Assembly (NCBI GenBank): GCA_038496445.1
Contig: JALMLS010000379.1
Span: forward strand, 62,001-126,000
Source of the DNA: Trichosphaerium sp. ATCC 40318
Lineage: Eukaryota; Protista; Tubulinea
Length of the DNA stretch: 64,000 bases
Direction: 5' to 3'
Below the pieces are notes generated by a model. That model made no database searches and was not told the DNA's origin. It saw only the letters and a list, made by a program, of their open reading frames with translations. Below are positions 6,636-45,968 of the stretch, one piece after another. Both the position numbers and the translations under genes were made by a program. Positions within the stretch are counted from its first letter, which is position 1. Every line of letters begins with the position of its first letter.

Positions 6636-8944
6636 TTAATATATATCCATAGAGTTCACAAACATCTTGTGCCTGTACACGCGTGTTAATATCAACATTG
6701 TTGAAAAAACTAGAGCCGTACAAATCATCTGGAGACGCTTGTTTTGGTGAAAGCTTTGTTACACGATGTTGAGGTAAAGTTCCTTAATACTGATTAATTC
6801 CAATTCTGAAAACAAAGATAAAATAAGCCAGTACCTTGTACAAGGTTGTCAAGGAAGTCATCTTTGCACCCAACTTTTCTGAGACCACCTGGTACGTTCA
6901 ATCTTTGCATATACTCAACGATCATATCAGACAATGCTCCAGACTTTTCTGACCTGTTGATCGTTATAAGTACCAGTTGTATTTCACGTTTCGTACTGTG
7001 TTGACTCAACACCAAGTACTTCAGCGGCTCTAGCAACGCGGTCTGTACGTGCAGGTTCGATGAACTAGTATTATTTATAAGTATACATAAAATAATACAA
7101 AACGCACTTTAAATACTGCTGGGGCATGCAATACAACAGACACTACAAGTAAAGCGTTAAGTATGCTCGAAATACTCTAGAAACGTACATCCATGTGGAA
7201 TAAGTGGATAGTCGAAGCCATCAGCAGTATAAGACTTGAGTTGGCTACTAACAGGATAGGACATGCCGTGCTAGTAAATGTAAGCATTTAGTTACCCACT
7301 GTTTGAGTAACGTACGCAAAGGTGAACTCCAGCAGTACCTACAAACGGAAAGTTAGGTCAGAGGGAAAAAAAACGTTTTTTGGTTGGAATACCAAATCCA
7401 ATTCCAGCGTATGTCGCCGCTAGTATCATCTGTGCACGTGCTTCCTCATCGCTTGGATCCTCAACAGCACGGTAAAAGTACTTTTGAAGAATTTTCAAAG
7501 CATAGAGAGACCACACATCAGAAATAGCTGTTTTCTAAGTCAAAGAAAAAAGCAAGAAAATACGTCATATCACGTGATAAGAAAAGAAAAAGATACGATT
7601 CGACCCTTGGTATGCAGGTCTGACATTTGGCGTTTCTGGTCGCGGACCTCTAGCATTGAAGGGAATAGCTGTGTACGATCTAAATTGAATAAGTATTTTT
7701 CTAATACTTCTAGTTGTACTCTAATGCGTGGCATAAAACGTCAAACCCAGCATAAGTCGCTACAGATCTAGGTTGTGTTGCTGTGTTTTCAACGTCAACC
7801 AACTAGCGCAAAGTGAGATCCGAAATAAATATGTTACGTACACCAAGAGTAGGCTTGAGGGAGCGATGAGCAATACCTGTCTTCGCTTTCATGTCCTCAA
7901 AATCGAAAATAGCAATACCTACAAGGGTTAAGAAGTCAACAAAAAAAAATCACATTCATTGTGAATTAATAGAACAAAAAAGTACCTGTAGCTTCACTAC
8001 CAGTTCCGGCAGTAGTAGGAATAGCAATAAGTGGTTTAAGAGGTCCAGGAGGCGGTTTTGCTATTAGTTTGAATTTTAACTACAAATTCTAAAATCTTTT
8101 CGTATCACGTGCCTTTACCGATTGGTGCATTTACGTAATCCAAAAAATCAGTTGTTGGGTGCGAAGAATACAAGTTAGCAGCTTTCGCAGTATCAATTGT
8201 AGAACCACCGCTATCGTAGCAACATCAGTGTACAGGCATTCGTAAAAATTCAAGTAAACAGCGTACCCTACTGCAATAAAACCGTCAACCTCGCTATCTT
8301 GAGCGAACTTGATAGCATGCTTGAACGACACATCAGTAGGTTCTACTTTTGTGTCCCTATCAATGTGTAAGTACGATGAAAAAACCGGACAAACAAACAT
8401 TTTGTTTTCATGAAAAGTTTTCCTAATTTGAAACAAGGGCATTTCGTTTTTTCACTTTTCCCAAACGGAAACAGAATGCTTCGTACTTGTACACAACATA
8501 GTTGACCTTGTTATCAACAAGAGATTGTTCTACCTTCGAAAGAGGGCCATCTTTTATTTTGGCGATGTTCTAAGGTGAAGTGAGCTAGAAACCGCCATGA
8601 AACGTATAGAGAGCGTACTTTATCTGTAAAAACAGCGACTTTGGAACCTACACATTTACAAAAAACGTTAAAACGAAGAAATACCCTTAAACGGCCTACG
8701 ACTTACATTTCAAGTGTACCATATCTTTACCAACCTCTCTTGTTACGCCCTTACCATACCTGAATGGCGTTTAGTTAACGCCGTTTGATTTTATGTTGTA
8801 GTCCATGTACCTGACATTAGAAGTAGCCATTTCAAAGGCGTAGTCAGTTTCATCGCCTCCTACGGTGTAAAAGGTACGCTTGGTATTTGTGACGCGCTTA
8901 GTGCGTTGTGGAGCGTATTGTCTAGTCAATGCGGTACGTAGCAT
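6636..8944 (-). CDS. ADHFE1: Hydroxyacid-oxoacid transhydrogenase, mitochondrial (Fe-ADH family)
   Basis: [76 protein letters not shown]; Arg-rich N-terminal presequence. Confidence 0.95.
7528..7596 (-). other. Candidate U12-type (minor spliceosome) GT-AG intron in ADHFE1
   Basis: Donor GTATCTTTTT; TTTCTTTGAC branch-like motif with A 12 nt from the 3' end. A nearer TAG must be skipped to keep SN-P-ISD in frame. Confidence 0.7.
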
Positions 8945-13912: not shown

Positions 13913-16900
13913 TTAAAACCCTTCAATTTTATCATACCAATTGCGTAATTGGGTGAGGTTATCTTTAATGTCGTCGTAGTTCTTACATTTCTCTTCAAAC
14001 CATGTTGTGGTACGACCACCGCCAAGATGGAAAGGATTGAAATTGTACTTAGTAAAGATAGACCAACCAGTAGAGGAAGTAGCGCCAATAGGATTAGCAT
14101 ACCAACCTATCAAATGTAAGAACTTGTATGGTAGATTTCTTGTTTGTTGAAAACACGTGACAGCAAAAAAAACCGCACCCCATGGAATAAAGAATCTAGC
14201 ATTTGCGTAAAGGTAAGATCCATCTACTTGCATAAGACCACCACCGCACCATGTGCCATCATCGCAAGGTTCCATCTAGTTTACATAAGAAACAAGAACA
14301 AAAAATGTTGTTTCTCGTACTTGTTTGCTCATCCAGAATAGCATGTTGTCTGCATCCTTGGTTAAGCTGGCTGCCCAGTCTGTTTTTCCTTGTCTATTAT
14401 ATTCATCTGCAAGTTTACGGCACATGTTTACAGCACCGAAAGACCATTCACCAGACCATATTGGATTAGTACCGTGCTTTACAGTGTAACCTAAAATATT
14501 CCTTTAGATTTTGTACTTTTTTTTTTCGAATTCAATGAGCTCAGAACACAAAAACTTAAAGGTATTTTATAGGATCAGGAGGAAACGTACCGACGCCAGC
14601 CAATTCTCCGTTGAAGTAAACACCAGACAATTTCTTGGCATTTTGCCAAACTTGATAAGCAGTGATACCGAGCTAAAGAAAAAAACGTGAACACAAAGTT
14701 TGCACGATAAGATAAAATCATATTTAATTCTTACGTCACTGTATGACTCATCAAAGATTTTAGATCCAGTTACTGTCATACCCCAAGTCTAAAAACATAA
14801 AAAGTTATTATGACGTCAACTTTAAAAAATCACAACAAAAAGATATTTATTTTTCAATAAAAAAAAGTTCGTTATCGGTACCTGACAATCAATAGCGTAA
14901 CCTTGTGTTCCGTTTTGAGGTGTAAAACTACCACCAAAAGTGACGTGTCCACCTTGGAATACATACTTCATGCCCTCTGTACGAAGATGTTAAAAAAAAT
15001 ATCGAACAACAAGAAACGCTTTTTGTACCTATTTCATAACCAGGCATCACAAGTTTGGACTTGAACCAACTTAACAAACCGGCTTGCATGTTTTTAACAT
15101 CAGTTAAACCTTGAGTAAGAACAGTATCTCCACCACCGACATAGTAAGTCTCAAGTGTATACTCGAGAGCAAGAAGAGCAGCGTAAGCAGAAAAGTTGTT
15201 TTCGTTTGATACGTTAGTTGCCTCATCAGGATCAGCTGGGAACATTTCCGTTCCTATGGTTAGGTAGTTAGTTTAAGATGATATGGATAGTTAAAATGTG
15301 TACCGAGTGGGCAATGGTAAAGAGAACCAAGTTTTGTTGCAAGAGCCTTCATGGCTGGTAAGATACTCAAAGCGAGTTGGACTTCGGCTGGAGCTTTATC
15401 AAATGTCTCAAACTTGGTAATATTCGAGCATTCTTTCAAATACATCACTTGAAGAGGTCCCAAAATAGCACCCCATACGTTTTCTCCAGTAATAGGTTTC
15501 CTAAGAGAGCATTAAAGAAAGAAAAATTGAAGAAAGTCGTTTTGTTGTCGTAACAACTTAAATCCAATAAAAACGCACCAGTCATTCCAATGAACCATAC
15601 CAGCAAGATTCCAAGGTGTAGTGGTATCATTGTTAGGTCCTGCTGGAGGAACTTTCCACATCCAACCTTTCTGCCGTGAGAAAAATAGAAGTACAAAAAA
15701 ATCACGTGTTTTTTAATACTTACCGTAGTCACCGCTTACTGGGTCGTGCATTGCGTATTTTGGTCCTATCATACGATAAAAGTAACCACCGCCAACTTTT
15801 CTTTCTGCGACTTGGTCGCAACATTCACCACAACACGTTGGATCTTGTAGTTTTACCTGTAATGAAAAAAAAAGGGTTACGTGACAATTCGTGTTAACTT
15901 TACGACCAAAAAGAAAAGACTTGTGTAAAACAAAAACTTACGTGTGACATGTTCCCTGGTAGTTTTACTGATGCCAAGGCATCTCCAGATATTTTACTTG
16001 CGCCATACTTATACCTATAAAAGAGAAAAAAGGGTAAGTCTTTGCCACCCTTTTTGTTCAAAAACGGAGACAAAATACCTTGAAGCGATGGCTCTAATTT
16101 GAATTAATCCGCCAGCTTGTGCGTTAGCACCTGTAGTAGATTGATAAAGGCTGGAGCGAAGGTAAAGCTCAACCTATTTTTGTCAACCAACTTTTTTGGG
16201 CAGTTGTTAAAAATACGAACCAATCCTGCGTATCCTTCAAGAGCAAGGGCTACACTCCACACACCACCATCGTATAAATTCAAACCGACGTTAGTCAATG
16301 TACGTTCTTGTTGAGCAATAGCAGAGTCGAATGGTAGCATGTTACCGAAAGGATCAAAGGCACCTGACATAAGAAGTTAACTCCTGAAAATAATTGGACA
16401 TTTCTTTAAACTATTGCAAAATGAAGTACTTCACTTTGTTTTTATTTTTATCGAGTTAAAAAATATGCGTACCGGAAGCAAGGTATGTTGGAGAATACCA
16501 GAATGATTTACCAGTGCATGGTATCATGTCATTGTAACTCTTTGGCATGCCATCCTTAATAAGGGCAATGAGCCATTGTACTATAATATCACGTGAGCAA
16601 TCATTAAATGCTTCGACACTACAGTCATCTCCTATTTTTTTGTCTGGGAGAAAAGCATACCTTGTGGATTTACAGTCATGTTGACCTATAACAAGCACGT
16701 GAGCATAGAGGAATATCAAAAGGAAAAAGCAAGAGCGGAGATGTTTTTACGAAAAAAGAACGTACGTATTTATCATTTGTCTCAAGCTCATAGTCGTAGG
16801 CCTCATACGTGTACAGGCATTGTGTACCTAGGATACGAATACTGTTAGTTTTACAAATTTTTTTAACTTGCTCGTACCGGTCATAGCGTTAAGAATTTTT

Positions 16901-19721: not shown

Positions 19722-22425
19722 ATGGCGCAGGAAAAGCAAAAGTTAGCTATGATTATATTATCTAAGCACTTTGGACCCATTGTAGCGGTAATTATATGAA
19801 TTGTAACGAATCTTATTTAATTTGAAAATAGAGTGTTGGAAACGTCCTAGCAAGTAATATGAGGCAAACAGACGTTACAATTATCGAAACCACTAAACTG
19901 CCTCGAGAAAAGGTGCGTAGTTAACCTTTTAATACCAAAACACTTCGTTTCGCTTTTAATAGCCTCAAGCCCGTTACTTCTGCTTTGCAAAAGCTTTTTT
20001 TTTGACTCTTTAGCGTTAACCTTCTAAAAATACGTTCAAAGGTAGCAGAAGCGCTAGTTGTTGGGATTGTACATAATTTTATTACATTTGAAACAGTATC
20101 TGCTGTACATGGGCCAGGTGGAACAGAAACTTATTACAAAATTGACTTGGATAATGTTCTCATTCGATTACGCTTTGCAAAGCTTGTTCAAATCGCAAAA
20201 GATAAATATGGTGACCACGTGCGTTCAAACAAATCCTACACGTGACATACGTGGCTCAAAAATGGCAGGTTTGTTAAAGGTTTTTTTTTGTTTTAGGCAG
20301 AATTGATCATTGAAGAGTTACTCAGCATTGGTACTTGTAAATTGGCGAGATTGATAGAAATATGTAAAGAAATAAGAAAGGAAATAACTGAACAGCACTA
20401 CAATGGTAAGGAGATACAAAACAAGCATGTCAAAACAATATTTTGGCGATTCCTGTTTTTTCAAAATGTGTCAAACAATACTGACATATGTCATTTAGAG
20501 GAACAAGAAAATAATGAGTTTAATGAAATCTTGGCACATTTGGTACTTTTTTTTTAAGCTTGAGCTAGCATTCAATTCTTAATTTAGCTTTGTTTAGAAG
20601 CGTCAAAGGTTTATCACAAAGGTTGGCGAACCAAAGAAAGCAGAATCAGACGATAAAGATAAAAAGGGAGATAAAAAGAAACCGGGTAAAAAAACAGCTA
20701 CAAAGGTAATAAAACGCATCAAAAAAATAAATTTCAATTTCGCTAACGTTTTAACCTGTGTTTAGAAGCGTAAGCGCGATACAAAATCATCATCACCAAA
20801 AAAGAGAGCAAAGAAAACGTCTAAGAAACAAGCCAAAGAATTAGAAGAGAATGATGACCACATCGCTCCAGAGATGAGATTTGCTCATCTACTTAACCCA
20901 GATGCTCCTCCACCACCAGAGGAGCTAGTACGTGGTACGCTAATCTTTAACAAATGAAGTCTTTTAGTCTTCACAACATTCTTTTATATTTATTTTGAGT
21001 AGCTCCTGTGGCGCCAAGGAAACCTAAATCTAGAGTTCCAAATGCCGCATTAGACGATGCTGAGTGGAGGGTTAATTATGCGCGATTCAGTTACGAAAGT
21101 TGTATTGAGGTGAGCGATAAAAACGGTTTTGTTCCTGCTCTATTTTATTCTCATTTTTTTTTTTTAACTCTTTTTTTTAAAGCACTGTATTCGCTGGGTT
21201 CAGAGAAGACTTGATTCAAAGAGTGCTAGGATTATAAGAGCTATGTTTAGTGTTATTGAAAGGGAAGGAACAAGTGCAAAACTAGGTATTATTGTTACTG
21301 TCGTACCTTAAATATTAACCCTTTTAGCTGTTGTATCTGATAAGAAAATCTACAGAGCACTATGTGATATTGATGCCAGTCGTCAGGACTCCAAACCTGT
21401 GACACTCAGTGGTGTACAGCATTACTTGAGTATTATGGCATCTGATGTTACAAGAATTGTGTTGGCTCAACCTGCCATTAATGATAGCAAACAATACACA
21501 GCCAGTATCCCAACAATAATTTTTCTTTTCATTCTTCTATTACCTCTTATTTGCGCACTTGTTTGCTTTCACTCTTTCTTTGATATCAGTGGTATGGCTG
21601 CGCGAATAAGAATAGCAGAAGTAGAATCCGTAGTTAGAAACAAGTTTGGCGTAAGAAGCTTGCGTTTGTTCAGACTCATTAGAGAAAAAAAATATATTGA
21701 AGAAACTCAGGTAAAGAAGCAGTTTATTGTTTATTCGTAACGTTCTAAGTACTTTGTTTCTTAGATTGCGGATTCAGCTATGGTTCCTATACAAGAGTGC
21801 AGGGTTGCTTTGTTCAAAATGTTACGAGCAGGATACCTTCATCTTCAGGTACAAGAAGTGGACATTATGTGAAAAAAGAATTTATTTATTGTCGTCAAAC
21901 CTTCTCTCCCATGCTCACGCTTTTCCAAATTAGGAAGTACAAAAAGCTAGAAAGGATGGTAAAATACTATGCTTGTGGGCTGTTAAATTACCAGGTACTT
22001 TTAACATACCTCTATTTGCGAAAGACTACACTCCAAGTCTTTGAATTGTTTTCCTAATTCACAACGCTTACCCTCTTTGTTTTTAACTAGAGGTTCAATT
22101 ACTCGTTCTGTCTGAAGTTTATAGAGCAATTAAGAACCTAAAATTACGATCTGAGCATGAACTAGAAGAAATGACAGGTACTGTACAAGCCTCTTTTTTT
22201 TGTTTTCTTCAAGCCATATTCGGAATTCCTTGTTTTTGCTCATCGCATCCTGTTTTAGAGTTAAATGGTAAAGCTGAGGCAGCGTATAATAATCCAGAGG
22301 AGGTTACGTTAACAGAGCAAGAGGAAACGCAAGTACAAAACGCGGAAATCTGCCAACAAAATATTGAAAACGCTATTCTGGCACTAGATGATACATTAAT
22401 GACACTCCGAGACTACCCATCGTAA
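19722..22425 (+). CDS. POLR3C: RNA polymerase III subunit C3 (RPC62/RPC82)
   Basis: MAQEKQKLAMIILSKHFGPIVASVG, LIIEELL, WRVNYARF, ESVVRNKFG..RLFRLI..KKYIEETQIADSAM, GYLHLQEV; about 13 introns. Confidence 0.9.
21505..21582 (+). other. Candidate U12-type intron with non-canonical GT-TG termini in POLR3C
   Basis: Starts GTATCC and ends ...ctttcactctttctttg. Removing it gives YTANISGMAARIRIAEVESVV, colinear with the RPC62 YVINLHKALASLATATLESVV region as recalled. Confidence 0.6.
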
Positions 22426-23376: not shown

Positions 23377-24613
23377 ATGGCGGGCACACGGGCGATGCTA
23401 TTACAGGAGGCTCACCTCGCCCAACAGACATCCAGAATCCCAGACATGGCAAACGCCATGATCGCTCTGGGGAATATGGGAAACGGATTCGATACAGACG
23501 AACGCGATTTATTCAGTCGGGCATGTAGGAAGCGCGTGGGTCAATGCCAAGGTGAGTTTTTAGGTTAAAACAGGCACTACAAAATACCCTATTTTTTTTT
23601 CAATGTTTGTTTTTTTTTGATTTCCTCAATACAGACGCATTTGTTATCACCATAAACGTGATAAATTGACAATCACGTTTATTTTTTTCGTTCCTAACAT
23701 TAATTGAAAGGAAAAAAAAAACCCTGACCTGTTCGTTTTCTCTGTTGGAAAAATGTCTTCGCCAATAAAAAAAAAACTTGTACAAAAAAAAAAATTTAAG
23801 AAGCAAACTAAAAAACCGCTCACACAAAATTCAAAACGTGAAAGAAAAATTATCACGTTTCCAAAATATTCCTTTATATTTTATTATTTTTTTTACCCAA
23901 GCCAAAAAAAATGTACGTCAGTTTATTTTGGATACATCCAAACGCATATGGAACGAAAAAAACCGGAAAAACAAATGGACCATTGTGGGTTTTTTTTTCT
24001 CTCTTTTTTTTTTTATTTCGTTTTTTACTCTTTATGTACTCACTCTCCTCTTTTAGCTTCCCTTCGCGCCATAACTACATTACTAGAACGTGAGCGTGAT
24101 AACAACGAAAGCTCTGTAAAGCTTGACCTAATCGAAAAATACAAGGATAAACTCTACGCTGAACTTCATACACTTTGTACACAAGTACTTGATGTTTTAG
24201 CAAACCGTGTTATACCTGTTACAAAAAATATCGAGGACCTTGTCCTCTACCATAAGATGCAAGGTGATTATTGGCGATACCTTGCGGAGTTTGGAAATAA
24301 GTCAAAATGTAGAGAGTACGCAAATAGAGCACATGCAGGGTACGAGAAAGGTCTTAATATTGCCGCATCAAAATTACAACCAACAAATTGGGTTCGTCTT
24401 GGTCTTTTGAACAATTTTTCAGTACTTTACTATGATGTACTCGATGATACTCAAGAGGCAGTTTTACACGCAAAGACTGCTTTTGACGAAGCTATAAGGA
24501 ATATAGCGGAGGCTAATTTTGAAGAAGAGCCATTTGATCTGACAATGCAGCTTTTAAGAGAGAATATCGCTTTATGGGAGAGGGAACAGCCAGAAGGAGA
24601 AAGAAGACGCTAA
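23377..24613 (+). CDS. Divergent 14-3-3 family protein
   Basis: DERDLFS, KMQGDYWRYLAE, LQPTNWVRLGLLNNFSVLYY, AFDEAI, MQLLRENIALW; one long intron (23552-24056). Confidence 0.92.
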
Positions 24614-43352: not shown

Positions 43353-45968
43353 ATGTTGAGATATATAAGTACTGGACATGCCGTTACGCGAGTGGCTACG
43401 GTAAAACTAAACATGTAACACTTTATGTTGACACTAGGTGTAGCAATCAGCCCAAAAACGTACCTATGTAACGCCCTCCAACTCAAAAGTATGCAAGAGC
43501 GCAAAGGAAGCGGTTGCTGGCATTAGAAAATCAAACACCGTGTAAGTGCCTTCTATACACTTTTATAACACTGTGTACCTACAAGCTGTTATATGCCGAT
43601 AAACTAAAACGTTTTAAGGCTCGTTGGTGGATTTGGCCTCTGTGGTATTCCAGAAAACCTCATCACTGCTCTACGAGATTCAGGAGTTGACGACCTAACC
43701 GTTGTATCTAACAATGCAGGTCAGCTCACTTGCAACCCTCAATTCAGCTTATTCGGTGTTAATAAAGGTTCTAGGCGTTGACGACTTTGGCCTAGGACTT
43801 CTTTTAAAGTCTAGACAAATTAGACGTATGATTTCGTCTTACGTTGGTGAAAACGCCGAGTTTGAGCGTCAATTTCTTGGTGGAGAACTAGAGGTACGTA
43901 GAAACAAAGAAAAATTTTTCAACTCTTCCTTTTGGACCAAAACTACAAAATTGAAAAGCTTTCCTGCCGGTTTCTGTGCGTTAACTGGTTATATAGGTAG
44001 AGCTTATTCCTCAAGGAAGTCTTGCAGAACGTGTTCGTTCAGCTGGAGCAGGTATTCCTGCTTTTTATACCAAAACTGGTGCAGGCACTCAACTTCAGTT
44101 TGGTGGCATTCCTATAAAGTGAGTAGGCGATAAACGGTGTTTATTTAGCAGTAGCGTGTTGACAGGTATTTTTTTTTGTAGATACAACAAAGACGGCACT
44201 GTTGCCATTATGTCTGACCCTAGACCTATTCAAAAGTTCAATAAGGAAACTTACTTGATGGAGAGAGGTATTTCTGGTGATTATGCATTGATTAAAGCGC
44301 ATAAAGCTGATACAAGAGGAAACCTTGTCTTCAGGTTCAAAAAAAAAAAGAAAAAAGCAATCTTCTCTTCGCTTTATTTACTTTACTTTCTAGAAAAACA
44401 GCTCGTAACTTCAACGCTCCTTTCGCTACTGCTGGTGATGTTACTATCGCTGAAGTAGAAGAGATTGTAGAGCCCGGACAATTAGATCCAGATGAGATTC
44501 ATTTGCCTGGCATCTATGTCAACAAAGTCATATTGGTATGTTCTATTAGAGTATCAATAAGAGTTGCTTTATTCATACTTCAACACGTGTCAACTTTTTG
44601 CTTCACCGGTGAAATAGACAGTTTGTTTTCTTTGATTCTTTGATTTTTTTTTCAGATTTTCAGTTTTCTTATTAATTCTTTTGTAAATAGGCTCAAAACC
44701 TTGAGAAACGTATAGAGAAGAGGACACTTACACAAGATAAAGGTGAAGAAGGGGAAAAAACACAAGCGCAACTTACAAGAGAGTTTATTGCTAAGCGTGC
44801 AGCAAAAGAGTTCAAGGTATGAAAAATCGCTTTAGGGTTTTTTTTGTCTTGATGAAAAGTGGTGCTCACGTGATTTAGGATGGTATGTATTGTAATCTTG
44901 GTATTGGTATCCCAACACTTGCTAGTAATTTCATAGAAGAAGGTACATCCCATACTACGATTGCCACACGAGACTAACACGTGGTATTCTTTTTGAAGGT
45001 GTTAAAATTGAATTACAATCTGAGAACGGTCTTCTCGGTTTTGGTCCATTCCCACGCCCAGGAGAAGAAGATGCTGATTTAATTAATGCTGGAAAAGAAA
45101 CTATTACAACTATTCCAGGATCTAGCGCATTTGGAAGCGATTTGTCATTTGGTATGATCCGTGGGTGCGTTGTCTTCTTGTCTTTTTTTTTTTCTTAGTG
45201 CAAAAAAAGTTGGATTGTTAATTTTTTGTTGTAGTGGTCATGTTGATCTAACTATTCTTGGTGCTATGCAAGTTAGCCAAAATGGTGATTTAGCTAATTG
45301 GATGATTCCTGGTAAGATGGTCAAAGGACCAGGTGGAGGTACGCTAGTAATTACATACAAATACAGTCGCTGCTGTTTTATTTACCTTTTTTTATAGCAA
45401 TGGATTTGGCAGCTTCTGGATCTCGTGTTGTTGTTACAATGGAACATACTGCTAAGGTAAATTATTTTATTAAATGTCAACTAGTAACCTGATGCATATT
45501 TTTTTATTTTGTTGTTGTTTTTCGTGATAACGTATTGACACGCATCCTAGAAAGGAACAAAAAAGATTCTAGAAGAGTGTACACTACCACTTACAGGAGC
45601 CAAATGCGTTGACCGTATTATTACTGATAAGGTACAAACAAACGAAAGGAATTACTGTTGATACTTACTAACATAAATCAAGTGTGTATTTGATATTATC
45701 GATGGTAACTTGACACTAATTGAACTTGCACCTGGTGTAAACGTAGATGAAGTACGTGCAATTATTATAAACTAATTAACTTTCATTATCACCAAGAAAA
45801 TAATCGATATCAATGACGAGAGTCAGAAGGGACTTCTGTTTTTTATTGATTTTTTTTTACTTTACAGTTTTTGTTTGGTTCGTTTTTTGACTTTGTTTTT
45901 TTTTCTAGGTTACAGCAGCTACAGGCGCTAAGTTTACTCTTGCTGCTAATATTAAGGGTATGCTGTGA
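43353..45968 (+). CDS. OXCT1: Succinyl-CoA:3-ketoacid CoA transferase, mitochondrial
   Basis: [44 protein letters not shown] active-site motif, [14 protein letters not shown]; 13 introns. Confidence 0.96.

Follow-up and report, generated by a model that had tools for sequence, protein, structure and literature searches.

Minor (U12-type) introns are far more tolerant of non-AG ends than major (U2-type) introns are. The terminal pair GT-TG has been catalogued in 29 of about 73,700 conserved minor introns of animals and in 15 of plants; the pairs GT-AT (319 in animals and 19 in plants), GT-GG (159 and 115) and GT-CG (46 and 5) are listed as well, and GT-TA and GT-CA are found roughly a tenth as often as GT-TG (PMC10639083 supplement). 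GT-TG is also listed among the human G-type minor introns (PMC8280824). In Physarum polycephalum, minor introns have relaxed [AG]TATC[CT] donors and a TTTGA branch motif placed 9-12 nucleotides (nt) before the 3' end, and many of them have non-AG/non-AC ends, the commonest pairs being AT-AG, AT-AA, GT-AT and AT-AT, with GT-TG not named (bioRxiv 10.1101/2020.10.12.336362). Here we describe a candidate GT-TG intron in the POLR3C gene (RPC3/RPC62/Rpc82) of the amoeba Trichosphaerium sp. ATCC 40318, in a window of 64,000 nt taken from contig JALMLS010000379.1 of assembly GCA_038496445.1 (positions 62,001 to 126,000, forward strand), which is numbered from its first letter throughout.

The POLR3C candidate resembles the GT-TG minor introns of animals and plants in its GT start, its TATCC donor and a 3' end that is one base off AG and keeps the terminal G. 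It differs from them in that the donor lacks TT at +7/+8, the motif that is correctly spaced for a branch point is degenerate and the junction is a predicted one. An amoebozoan lineage, relaxed donors and non-AG ends are shared with Physarum, but GT-TG is not among the pairs named there. TG 3' splice sites also occur in major-type introns, among them an alternative site in TSPYL2 and a functional site in GNAS, and such sites are mostly alternatives to an AG a few bases away. The POLR3C candidate is similar to these in ending with TG and having an AG nearby, but its donor is U12-like, and the AG, 7 nt away, is out of frame. As judged from its sequence, the POLR3C intron is most likely of the minor (U12) type, starting at 21505 with GTATCC and lacking a usable in-frame AG. 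That it is a true GT-TG minor intron of 78 nt, spanning 21505-21582, is a tentative reading to which we assign a probability of roughly 0.45.

The exons of POLR3C were traced by eye, and the joined frame was then checked by script. When 21505-21582 was excised, the 555-codon model contained a single stop, which was the terminal one. By similarity the gene is POLR3C, as the first-pass annotation had proposed, and both the C-terminal winged-helix domain and a resemblance to solved RPC3 are present. The Pfam profile POLR3C_WHD (PF22536) matched exon 11 with 32.6 bits (cut-off 30) and exon 12 with 22.4 bits, RNA_pol_Rpc82 (PF05645) gave a weak match to exon 9, and the human RPC3 chain 2xub_A (PDB) was matched at an E value of 2.4e-5. 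Residues 343-379 of human RPC3 were aligned by HMMER with ARIRIAEVESVVRNKFGVRSLRLFRLIREKKYIEETQ; in exon 11, A(A)RIRIAEVESVV... is placed against 342/343-379, and the POLR3C_WHD match begins at VESVV. Just one frame is open across the whole of exon 10, and it carries on the frame of exon 9 once the 42-nt intron 9 is removed. The 13 other introns of the gene measure 42-129 nt, and all 13 are GT-AG. Two of the POLR3C introns, at 19788-19831 (44 nt) and 21286-21327 (42 nt), are very short for spliceosomal introns and lie near the lower size limit. Exons 6 and 7 (20598-20934) encode a lysine-rich stretch of low complexity (KKGDKKKPGKKTATK, KRKRDTKSSSPKKRAKKTSKKQAK), at a place where human RPC3 presumably carries an acidic/basic insertion.

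The segment under study starts with GTATCCCAA after the exon sequence ...ACAGCCA and ends ...CTTTCACTCTTTCTTTG/ATATCAG, or in longer context GCTTTCACTCTTTCTTTG/ATATCAG (the slash marks a splice junction). It contains 13 A, 19 C, 6 G and 40 T (76% pyrimidine), is in frame and has no stop. These features were as the first-pass annotation had described them, namely a stop-free, pyrimidine-rich insert of 78 nt that starts with GTATCC and ends CTTTG/ATATC with no in-phase AG at the expected end. The stop-free state carries no weight, because 51% of composition-matched shuffles of the segment were equally stop-free. Excision of the 78 nt yields ...KQYTANISGMAARIRIAEVESVV... in the open model, while their retention would add a 26-residue hydrophobic stretch (SIPTIIFLFILLLPLICALVCFHSFF...), which translation confirmed to be of the length and character annotated earlier. 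Markov models of order 1 and order 2, trained on POLR3C's own exons and introns, gave the segment a log-likelihood of -19 to -24 bits, which is intron-like, and on the basis of this composition 21505-21582 is an intron.

The same evidence makes it extremely unlikely that the 78 nt are translated as a hydrophobic insert in RPC3. Such an insert would be in frame and free of stops, a state reached by chance in half of the shuffles, but its composition is strongly intron-like. It would place a membrane-like segment between two winged-helix domains of a nuclear polymerase subunit, with no counterpart in human RPC3, and HMMER aligned human RPC3 only to residues 90-127 of the query, which follow the insert, with none of the insert residues included.

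The donor of the segment stands apart within the gene. GTATCC with A at -1 is the sole case among the 14 POLR3C donors: G occupies -1 in 12 of the other 13, and TCC at +4 to +6 occurs in none of them, in agreement with the earlier statement that no other traced intron uses GTATCC. The U2-type donors of POLR3C are otherwise loose, consisting of GTA or GTG followed by almost anything. The U12-type core [AG]TATCC is present at the exon end, with the match limited to these six bases, as the TT at +7/+8 is replaced by CA. About 30 GTATCC hexamers are expected in the window by simple arithmetic; the one considered here is notable because it is placed where the sequence turns from exon-like to intron-like. 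Its sequence suggests a donor of a U12-type (minor-spliceosome) intron.

At the 3' side, no GT-AG solution preserves the frame and the helix together. Use of the nearest AG, at 21588-21589, results in an 85-nt intron with a stop 7 codons on, and the in-phase AGs at 21615 and 21618 would remove 11-12 residues, where about 10 had been estimated in the first-pass annotation, including those aligned by HMMER to residues 342-349 of human RPC3. A functional messenger RNA therefore needs a non-AG 3' end, unless base 21581 is wrong. Two further arrangements were rejected. Of the other GT donors, GTTGGC near 21460 alone is in phase with the AG at 21589, but it is poor and would delete 14 residues, and an 84-nt option (GT-CA, which is the same as TA-AG) has rare ends and poor branch distances.

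The 85-nt product could nevertheless be genuine if this were a major-type (U2) intron, GT(21505)...AG(21589), with a frameshift that leaves the copy or allele defective or most of its transcripts unproductive. CTTTCACTCTTTCTTTGATATCAG provides a good pyrimidine tract and CAG for such an intron, and the looseness of the U2-type donors of POLR3C would accommodate it. However, the gene of 15 exons is otherwise intact, POLR3C is as a rule an essential gene and, to current knowledge, a single-copy one, and A at -1 together with TCC at +4 to +6 is unlike the 13 U2-type donors. We consider this explanation quite improbable.

Were the intron instead a canonical GT-AG one, 111 or 114 nt long, with TAG at 21615 or CAG at 21618 as its end and ...YTA-T-EVESVV or ...YTA-K-VESVV as its product, both versions would be in frame and have canonical ends. 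The POLR3C_WHD model starts no earlier than VESVV, and the A of a branch-like motif at the junction, TTCTTTGAT, would lie at -33 or -36, inside the 45-nt window of intronIC (bioRxiv 10.1101/2020.10.12.336362). Set against these points is the sequence that would have to be intronic: 21583-21618 was the most exon-like 36-mer tested, at +10 bits, and the tails of all 13 POLR3C introns scored lower (-16 to +4). It encodes A(A)RIRIAE, which aligns to human RPC3 at 342-349. The out-of-frame AGs at 21589 and 21610 come earlier, and no pyrimidine tract precedes the AGs at 21615 and 21618. An intron of this length is very unlikely.

The proposed junction itself bears a mark of an ordinary acceptor. TTTCTTTG/AT and the intron 11 acceptor, TTTCTTAG/AT, differ at one base, where T at 21581 stands in place of A, and this near-identity favours the junction 21582/21583, or else a variant or base-call error at 21581. 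In the GT-TG reading, the TATCC donor would be recognised by U11 and U6atac, U12 would pair with the branch motif 12 nt upstream (TGCTTTCAC), and the second step would pick the site at the right distance, where the last base is G though the dinucleotide is TG. The acceptor would then be an ordinary TTTCTTAG/AT that was hit by an A-to-T change and has stayed usable, distance outweighing AG in the choice of 3' site by the minor spliceosome. Joining GCC A/AT ATC would give ...YTA-N-ISGMAARIRIAEVESVV. Human RPC3 presumably reads ...MYVINLHKALASLATATLESVV; Y, N and I/L would then align gap-free under the 78-nt excision, and the spacing in yeast Rpc82 is presumably the same to within one residue. 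The RPC62 spacing invoked in the first-pass annotation depends on human residues upstream of L342; the HMMER alignment covered residues 342-379. A full-text search for the human peptide found no paper.

The alternative offered by the same near-identity is that the acceptor is an ordinary TAG at 21580-21582 and that the T at 21581 reflects a miscalled base or a variant allele taken up in the assembly, leaving a plain 78-nt GT-AG intron of the U12 type or of the U2 type with an odd donor. An A at this base would make the acceptor identical to that of intron 11; the competing branch-like motif would vanish, and the donor alone would stay unusual. On the other hand, about 1.7 kilobases of POLR3C coding sequence and the traced exons of ADHFE1, a second gene in the window, contain no frame errors, even through runs of A7-A8, and an A-to-T change at precisely this base is improbable a priori. 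In view of this accurate-looking assembly, we regard an error or variant at 21581 as improbable.

The sole further U12-like intron in the window that could be verified by frame is in ADHFE1, and it provided a comparator for the branch motifs. Excision of its 69 nt, and that alone, keeps the flanking protein frame open, and the exon downstream matches Pfam ADH_Fe_C. Its branch motif, TTCTTTGAC, has the A at -13 of the AG that is used, and an AG 5 nt past the branch A, the use of which gives a stop, must be skipped. The donor, GTATCTTTTT, indicates that relaxed donors occur in this window. The ADHFE1 and POLR3C introns both have a GTATC donor that lacks G at -1, and in both a TTCTTTGA[CT] motif is closely followed by an AG. 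They differ in that ADHFE1 has an in-frame AG 12 nt past the branch A, whereas POLR3C has none.

Branch motifs of minor introns are of the TTCCTTRAY or TTTGA type and lie about 9-15 nt ahead of the 3' end. Two motifs in POLR3C resemble the ADHFE1 branch motif. CTTTCAC lies within TGCTTTCAC, which matches TTCTTTGAC at 7 of 9 positions; one of the mismatches falls on the purine beside the branch A, TGCTTTCAC having C where minor-intron branch motifs have a purine. Its A (21571) is 11 nt before 21582, as annotated earlier, and thus at -12, compared with -13 in ADHFE1 and -10 to -12 in the minor introns of Physarum. Twelve bases downstream of CTTTCAC, TTCTTTGAT matches TTCTTTGAC at 8 of 9 positions and contains TTTGA, the branch motif of Physarum minor introns; the U12 type of Trichosphaerium may differ. 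CTTTCAC, the branch-like motif of the first-pass annotation, is thus a poorer match than TTCTTTGAT, which is near-consensus but overlaps the proposed junction. Two further copies of the 9-mer TTCTTTGAT lie in a U2-type intron at 44628-44644 (plus strand), as a tandem TTCTTTGATTCTTTGAT, with the donor GTATGT near 44538 and the end TTTTCAG, an example of this branch-like sequence arising in ordinary pyrimidine tracts too. TTTCTTTG/AT is one change away from the intron 11 acceptor, so mutation of an ordinary acceptor could in itself account for the likeness of the 9-mer to a branch motif.

If TTCTTTGAT (A21583) were the branch instead, with the same U12-type donor, the 3' end must fall downstream of 21590, 9-18 nt beyond the one proposed. 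The foremost version is GT-GG at 21597 (93 nt), giving ...YTA-T-ARIRIAEV; others are GT-TG at 21591 (87 nt), GT-TA at 21594 (90 nt) and GT-TG at 21600 (96 nt). The branch A would then be at -15, -9, -12 and -18, respectively, and the AG 6 nt past it would be skipped as too close, as is the AG 5 nt past the branch A in the ADHFE1 intron that TTCTTTGAT so nearly matches. The presence of TTTGA would agree with Physarum, none of the versions breaks the frame or loses a residue that HMMER aligned to human RPC3 at 343 or beyond, and GT-GG is 5-8 times commoner than GT-TG in conserved minor introns (PMC10639083). Against this, 21583-21597 was exon-like (+5 bits at order 1 and +8 bits at order 2), although the spacer after the U12 branch in ADHFE1 is not T-rich either. 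The best-placed site, an AT at -13 (91 nt), frameshifts, and 3-6 residues would be lost between the YTA strand and the VESVV helix, where the spacing is presumably shared by human RPC3 and, to within one residue, by the yeast protein. Chance copies of the 9-mer are present in the U2-type intron mentioned above, and the 9-mer also equals an ordinary acceptor, TTCTTAG/AT, after one A-to-T change. A branch at TTCTTTGAT with a 3' end further downstream is, in our estimate, doubtful and somewhat unlikely.

Several observations weigh against the GT-TG reading. A canonical CAG lies at -19 from the A of CTTTCAC, within the usual range, and its use would frameshift. The donor has CA rather than TT at +7 and +8, and the segment carries a long T-rich tract, as the U2-type introns of POLR3C do. 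TTCTTTGAT, the better of the branch-like motifs, lies across the proposed junction, and its sequence suggests that it would pair with U12 better than TGCTTTCAC. T at 21581 is the base given by the assembly, and the 78-nt junction is a predicted one. The earlier proposal of a GT-TG, U12-like intron is therefore retained in part: it agrees with the U12-like donor, the intron composition and a terminal pair already known, while CTTTCAC is the poorer of the two branch-like motifs, and the exact 3' cut, like the branch point and the type of spliceosome, is one that we infer.

The tandem branch motifs, 12 nt apart, are the sole unusual twist of this intron. Each stands 12 nt before an in-frame non-AG site (78 and 90 nt, with the GG at 93 nt nearby), and it might be speculated, at long odds, that the minor spliceosome produces RPC3 isoforms with 4-5 residues more or fewer where the last winged-helix domain begins, or that the junction motif is a decoy tying the output of this RNA polymerase III subunit to minor-spliceosome activity.

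A protein word search with the 127-residue read-through open reading frame (ORF), which covered proteins of 70-222 residues, returned nothing. The RNA_pol_Rpc82 Pfam profile gave no alignment across the proposed junction, and exons 9 and 10 had no match in the PDB. No product of this POLR3C or of a close relative was found in an HMMER scan of 1.84 billion representative proteins, which returned one spurious match to a 5786-residue protein. Metagenome scans with exons 10 and 3 found no related locus, and an Rfam scan of the 64-kilobase window detected no small nuclear RNA. The coordinates of the features are collected in Table 1.

Table 1. Positions, in window coordinates, of the candidate POLR3C intron, its splice-site and branch-point elements, its gene and the ADHFE1 comparator.
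Feature	Position	Strand	Remark or basis
Candidate intron GT...TG	21505..21582	+	78 nt
Donor GTATCC	21505..21510	+	A at -1; CA at +7/+8, CAA after GTATCC instead of TT
CTTTCAC branch-like motif	21566..21572	+	A at 21571, -12 of 3' end at 21582
TTCTTTGAT, second, stronger branch-like motif	21576..21584	+	A at 21583; straddles proposed 3' junction (TTCTTTG/AT)
Proposed non-AG 3' end TG	21581..21582	+	intron table
Nearest AG	21588..21589	+	85-nt intron, frameshift
GG, alternative in-frame 3' end	21596..21597	+	93-nt GT-GG; A of TTCTTTGAT at -15
Further in-frame 3' ends	21591 (TG), 21594 (TA), 21600 (TG)	+	frame check
POLR3C (RPC3/RPC62/Rpc82) gene	19722..22425	+	15 exons, complete; 555 codons with 78 nt removed
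Exon 10	21328..21504	+	ends ...KQYTA plus one base (phase 1)
Exon 11 as proposed	21583..21710	+	starts NISGMAARIRIAEVESVVRNKFG...
ADHFE1 U12-like GT-AG intron, 69 nt (GTATCTTTTT...TTCTTTGACTTAGAAAACAG)	7528..7596	-	frame check

The window was scanned for calibration, both for RTATCCTT matches and for donors combined with a branch motif, and what was found was mostly coding or antisense sequence. For candidates at 16836, 14846 and 34348 no support from homology was found, and they were set aside. At 16705-16836 (minus strand), a 101-codon ORF ends at GTATCCTAG and is followed by an 82-codon ORF, with flanks that have no homology support; TTTTGAT is followed by an in-frame AT at a distance of 12 nt and by an in-frame AC at 18 nt. 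A minor intron with GT-AT or GT-AC ends would explain this arrangement, but so would a plain stop codon. ADHFE1 also contains an intron of about 41 nt near the lower spliceosomal size limit, at 7681-7721 (minus strand; the coordinates of the short introns are approximate). Just downstream of POLR3C, at about 24100-24500 (plus strand), there is an open frame with typical 14-3-3 motifs (YHKMQGDYWRYLAEF, NFSVLYYD).

The class of GT-TG minor introns is already known, and the novelty of the POLR3C case is modest; it opens no new question, because such introns have been catalogued in animals and plants. It does carry a warning for gene prediction, in that a model restricted to GT-AG introns would break POLR3C or add 26 false residues to its product. 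If the GT-TG reading is true, the intron would be a further natural case of the minor spliceosome choosing its 3' site by distance and tolerating TG, and one located in an essential gene of an amoeba that has been little studied.

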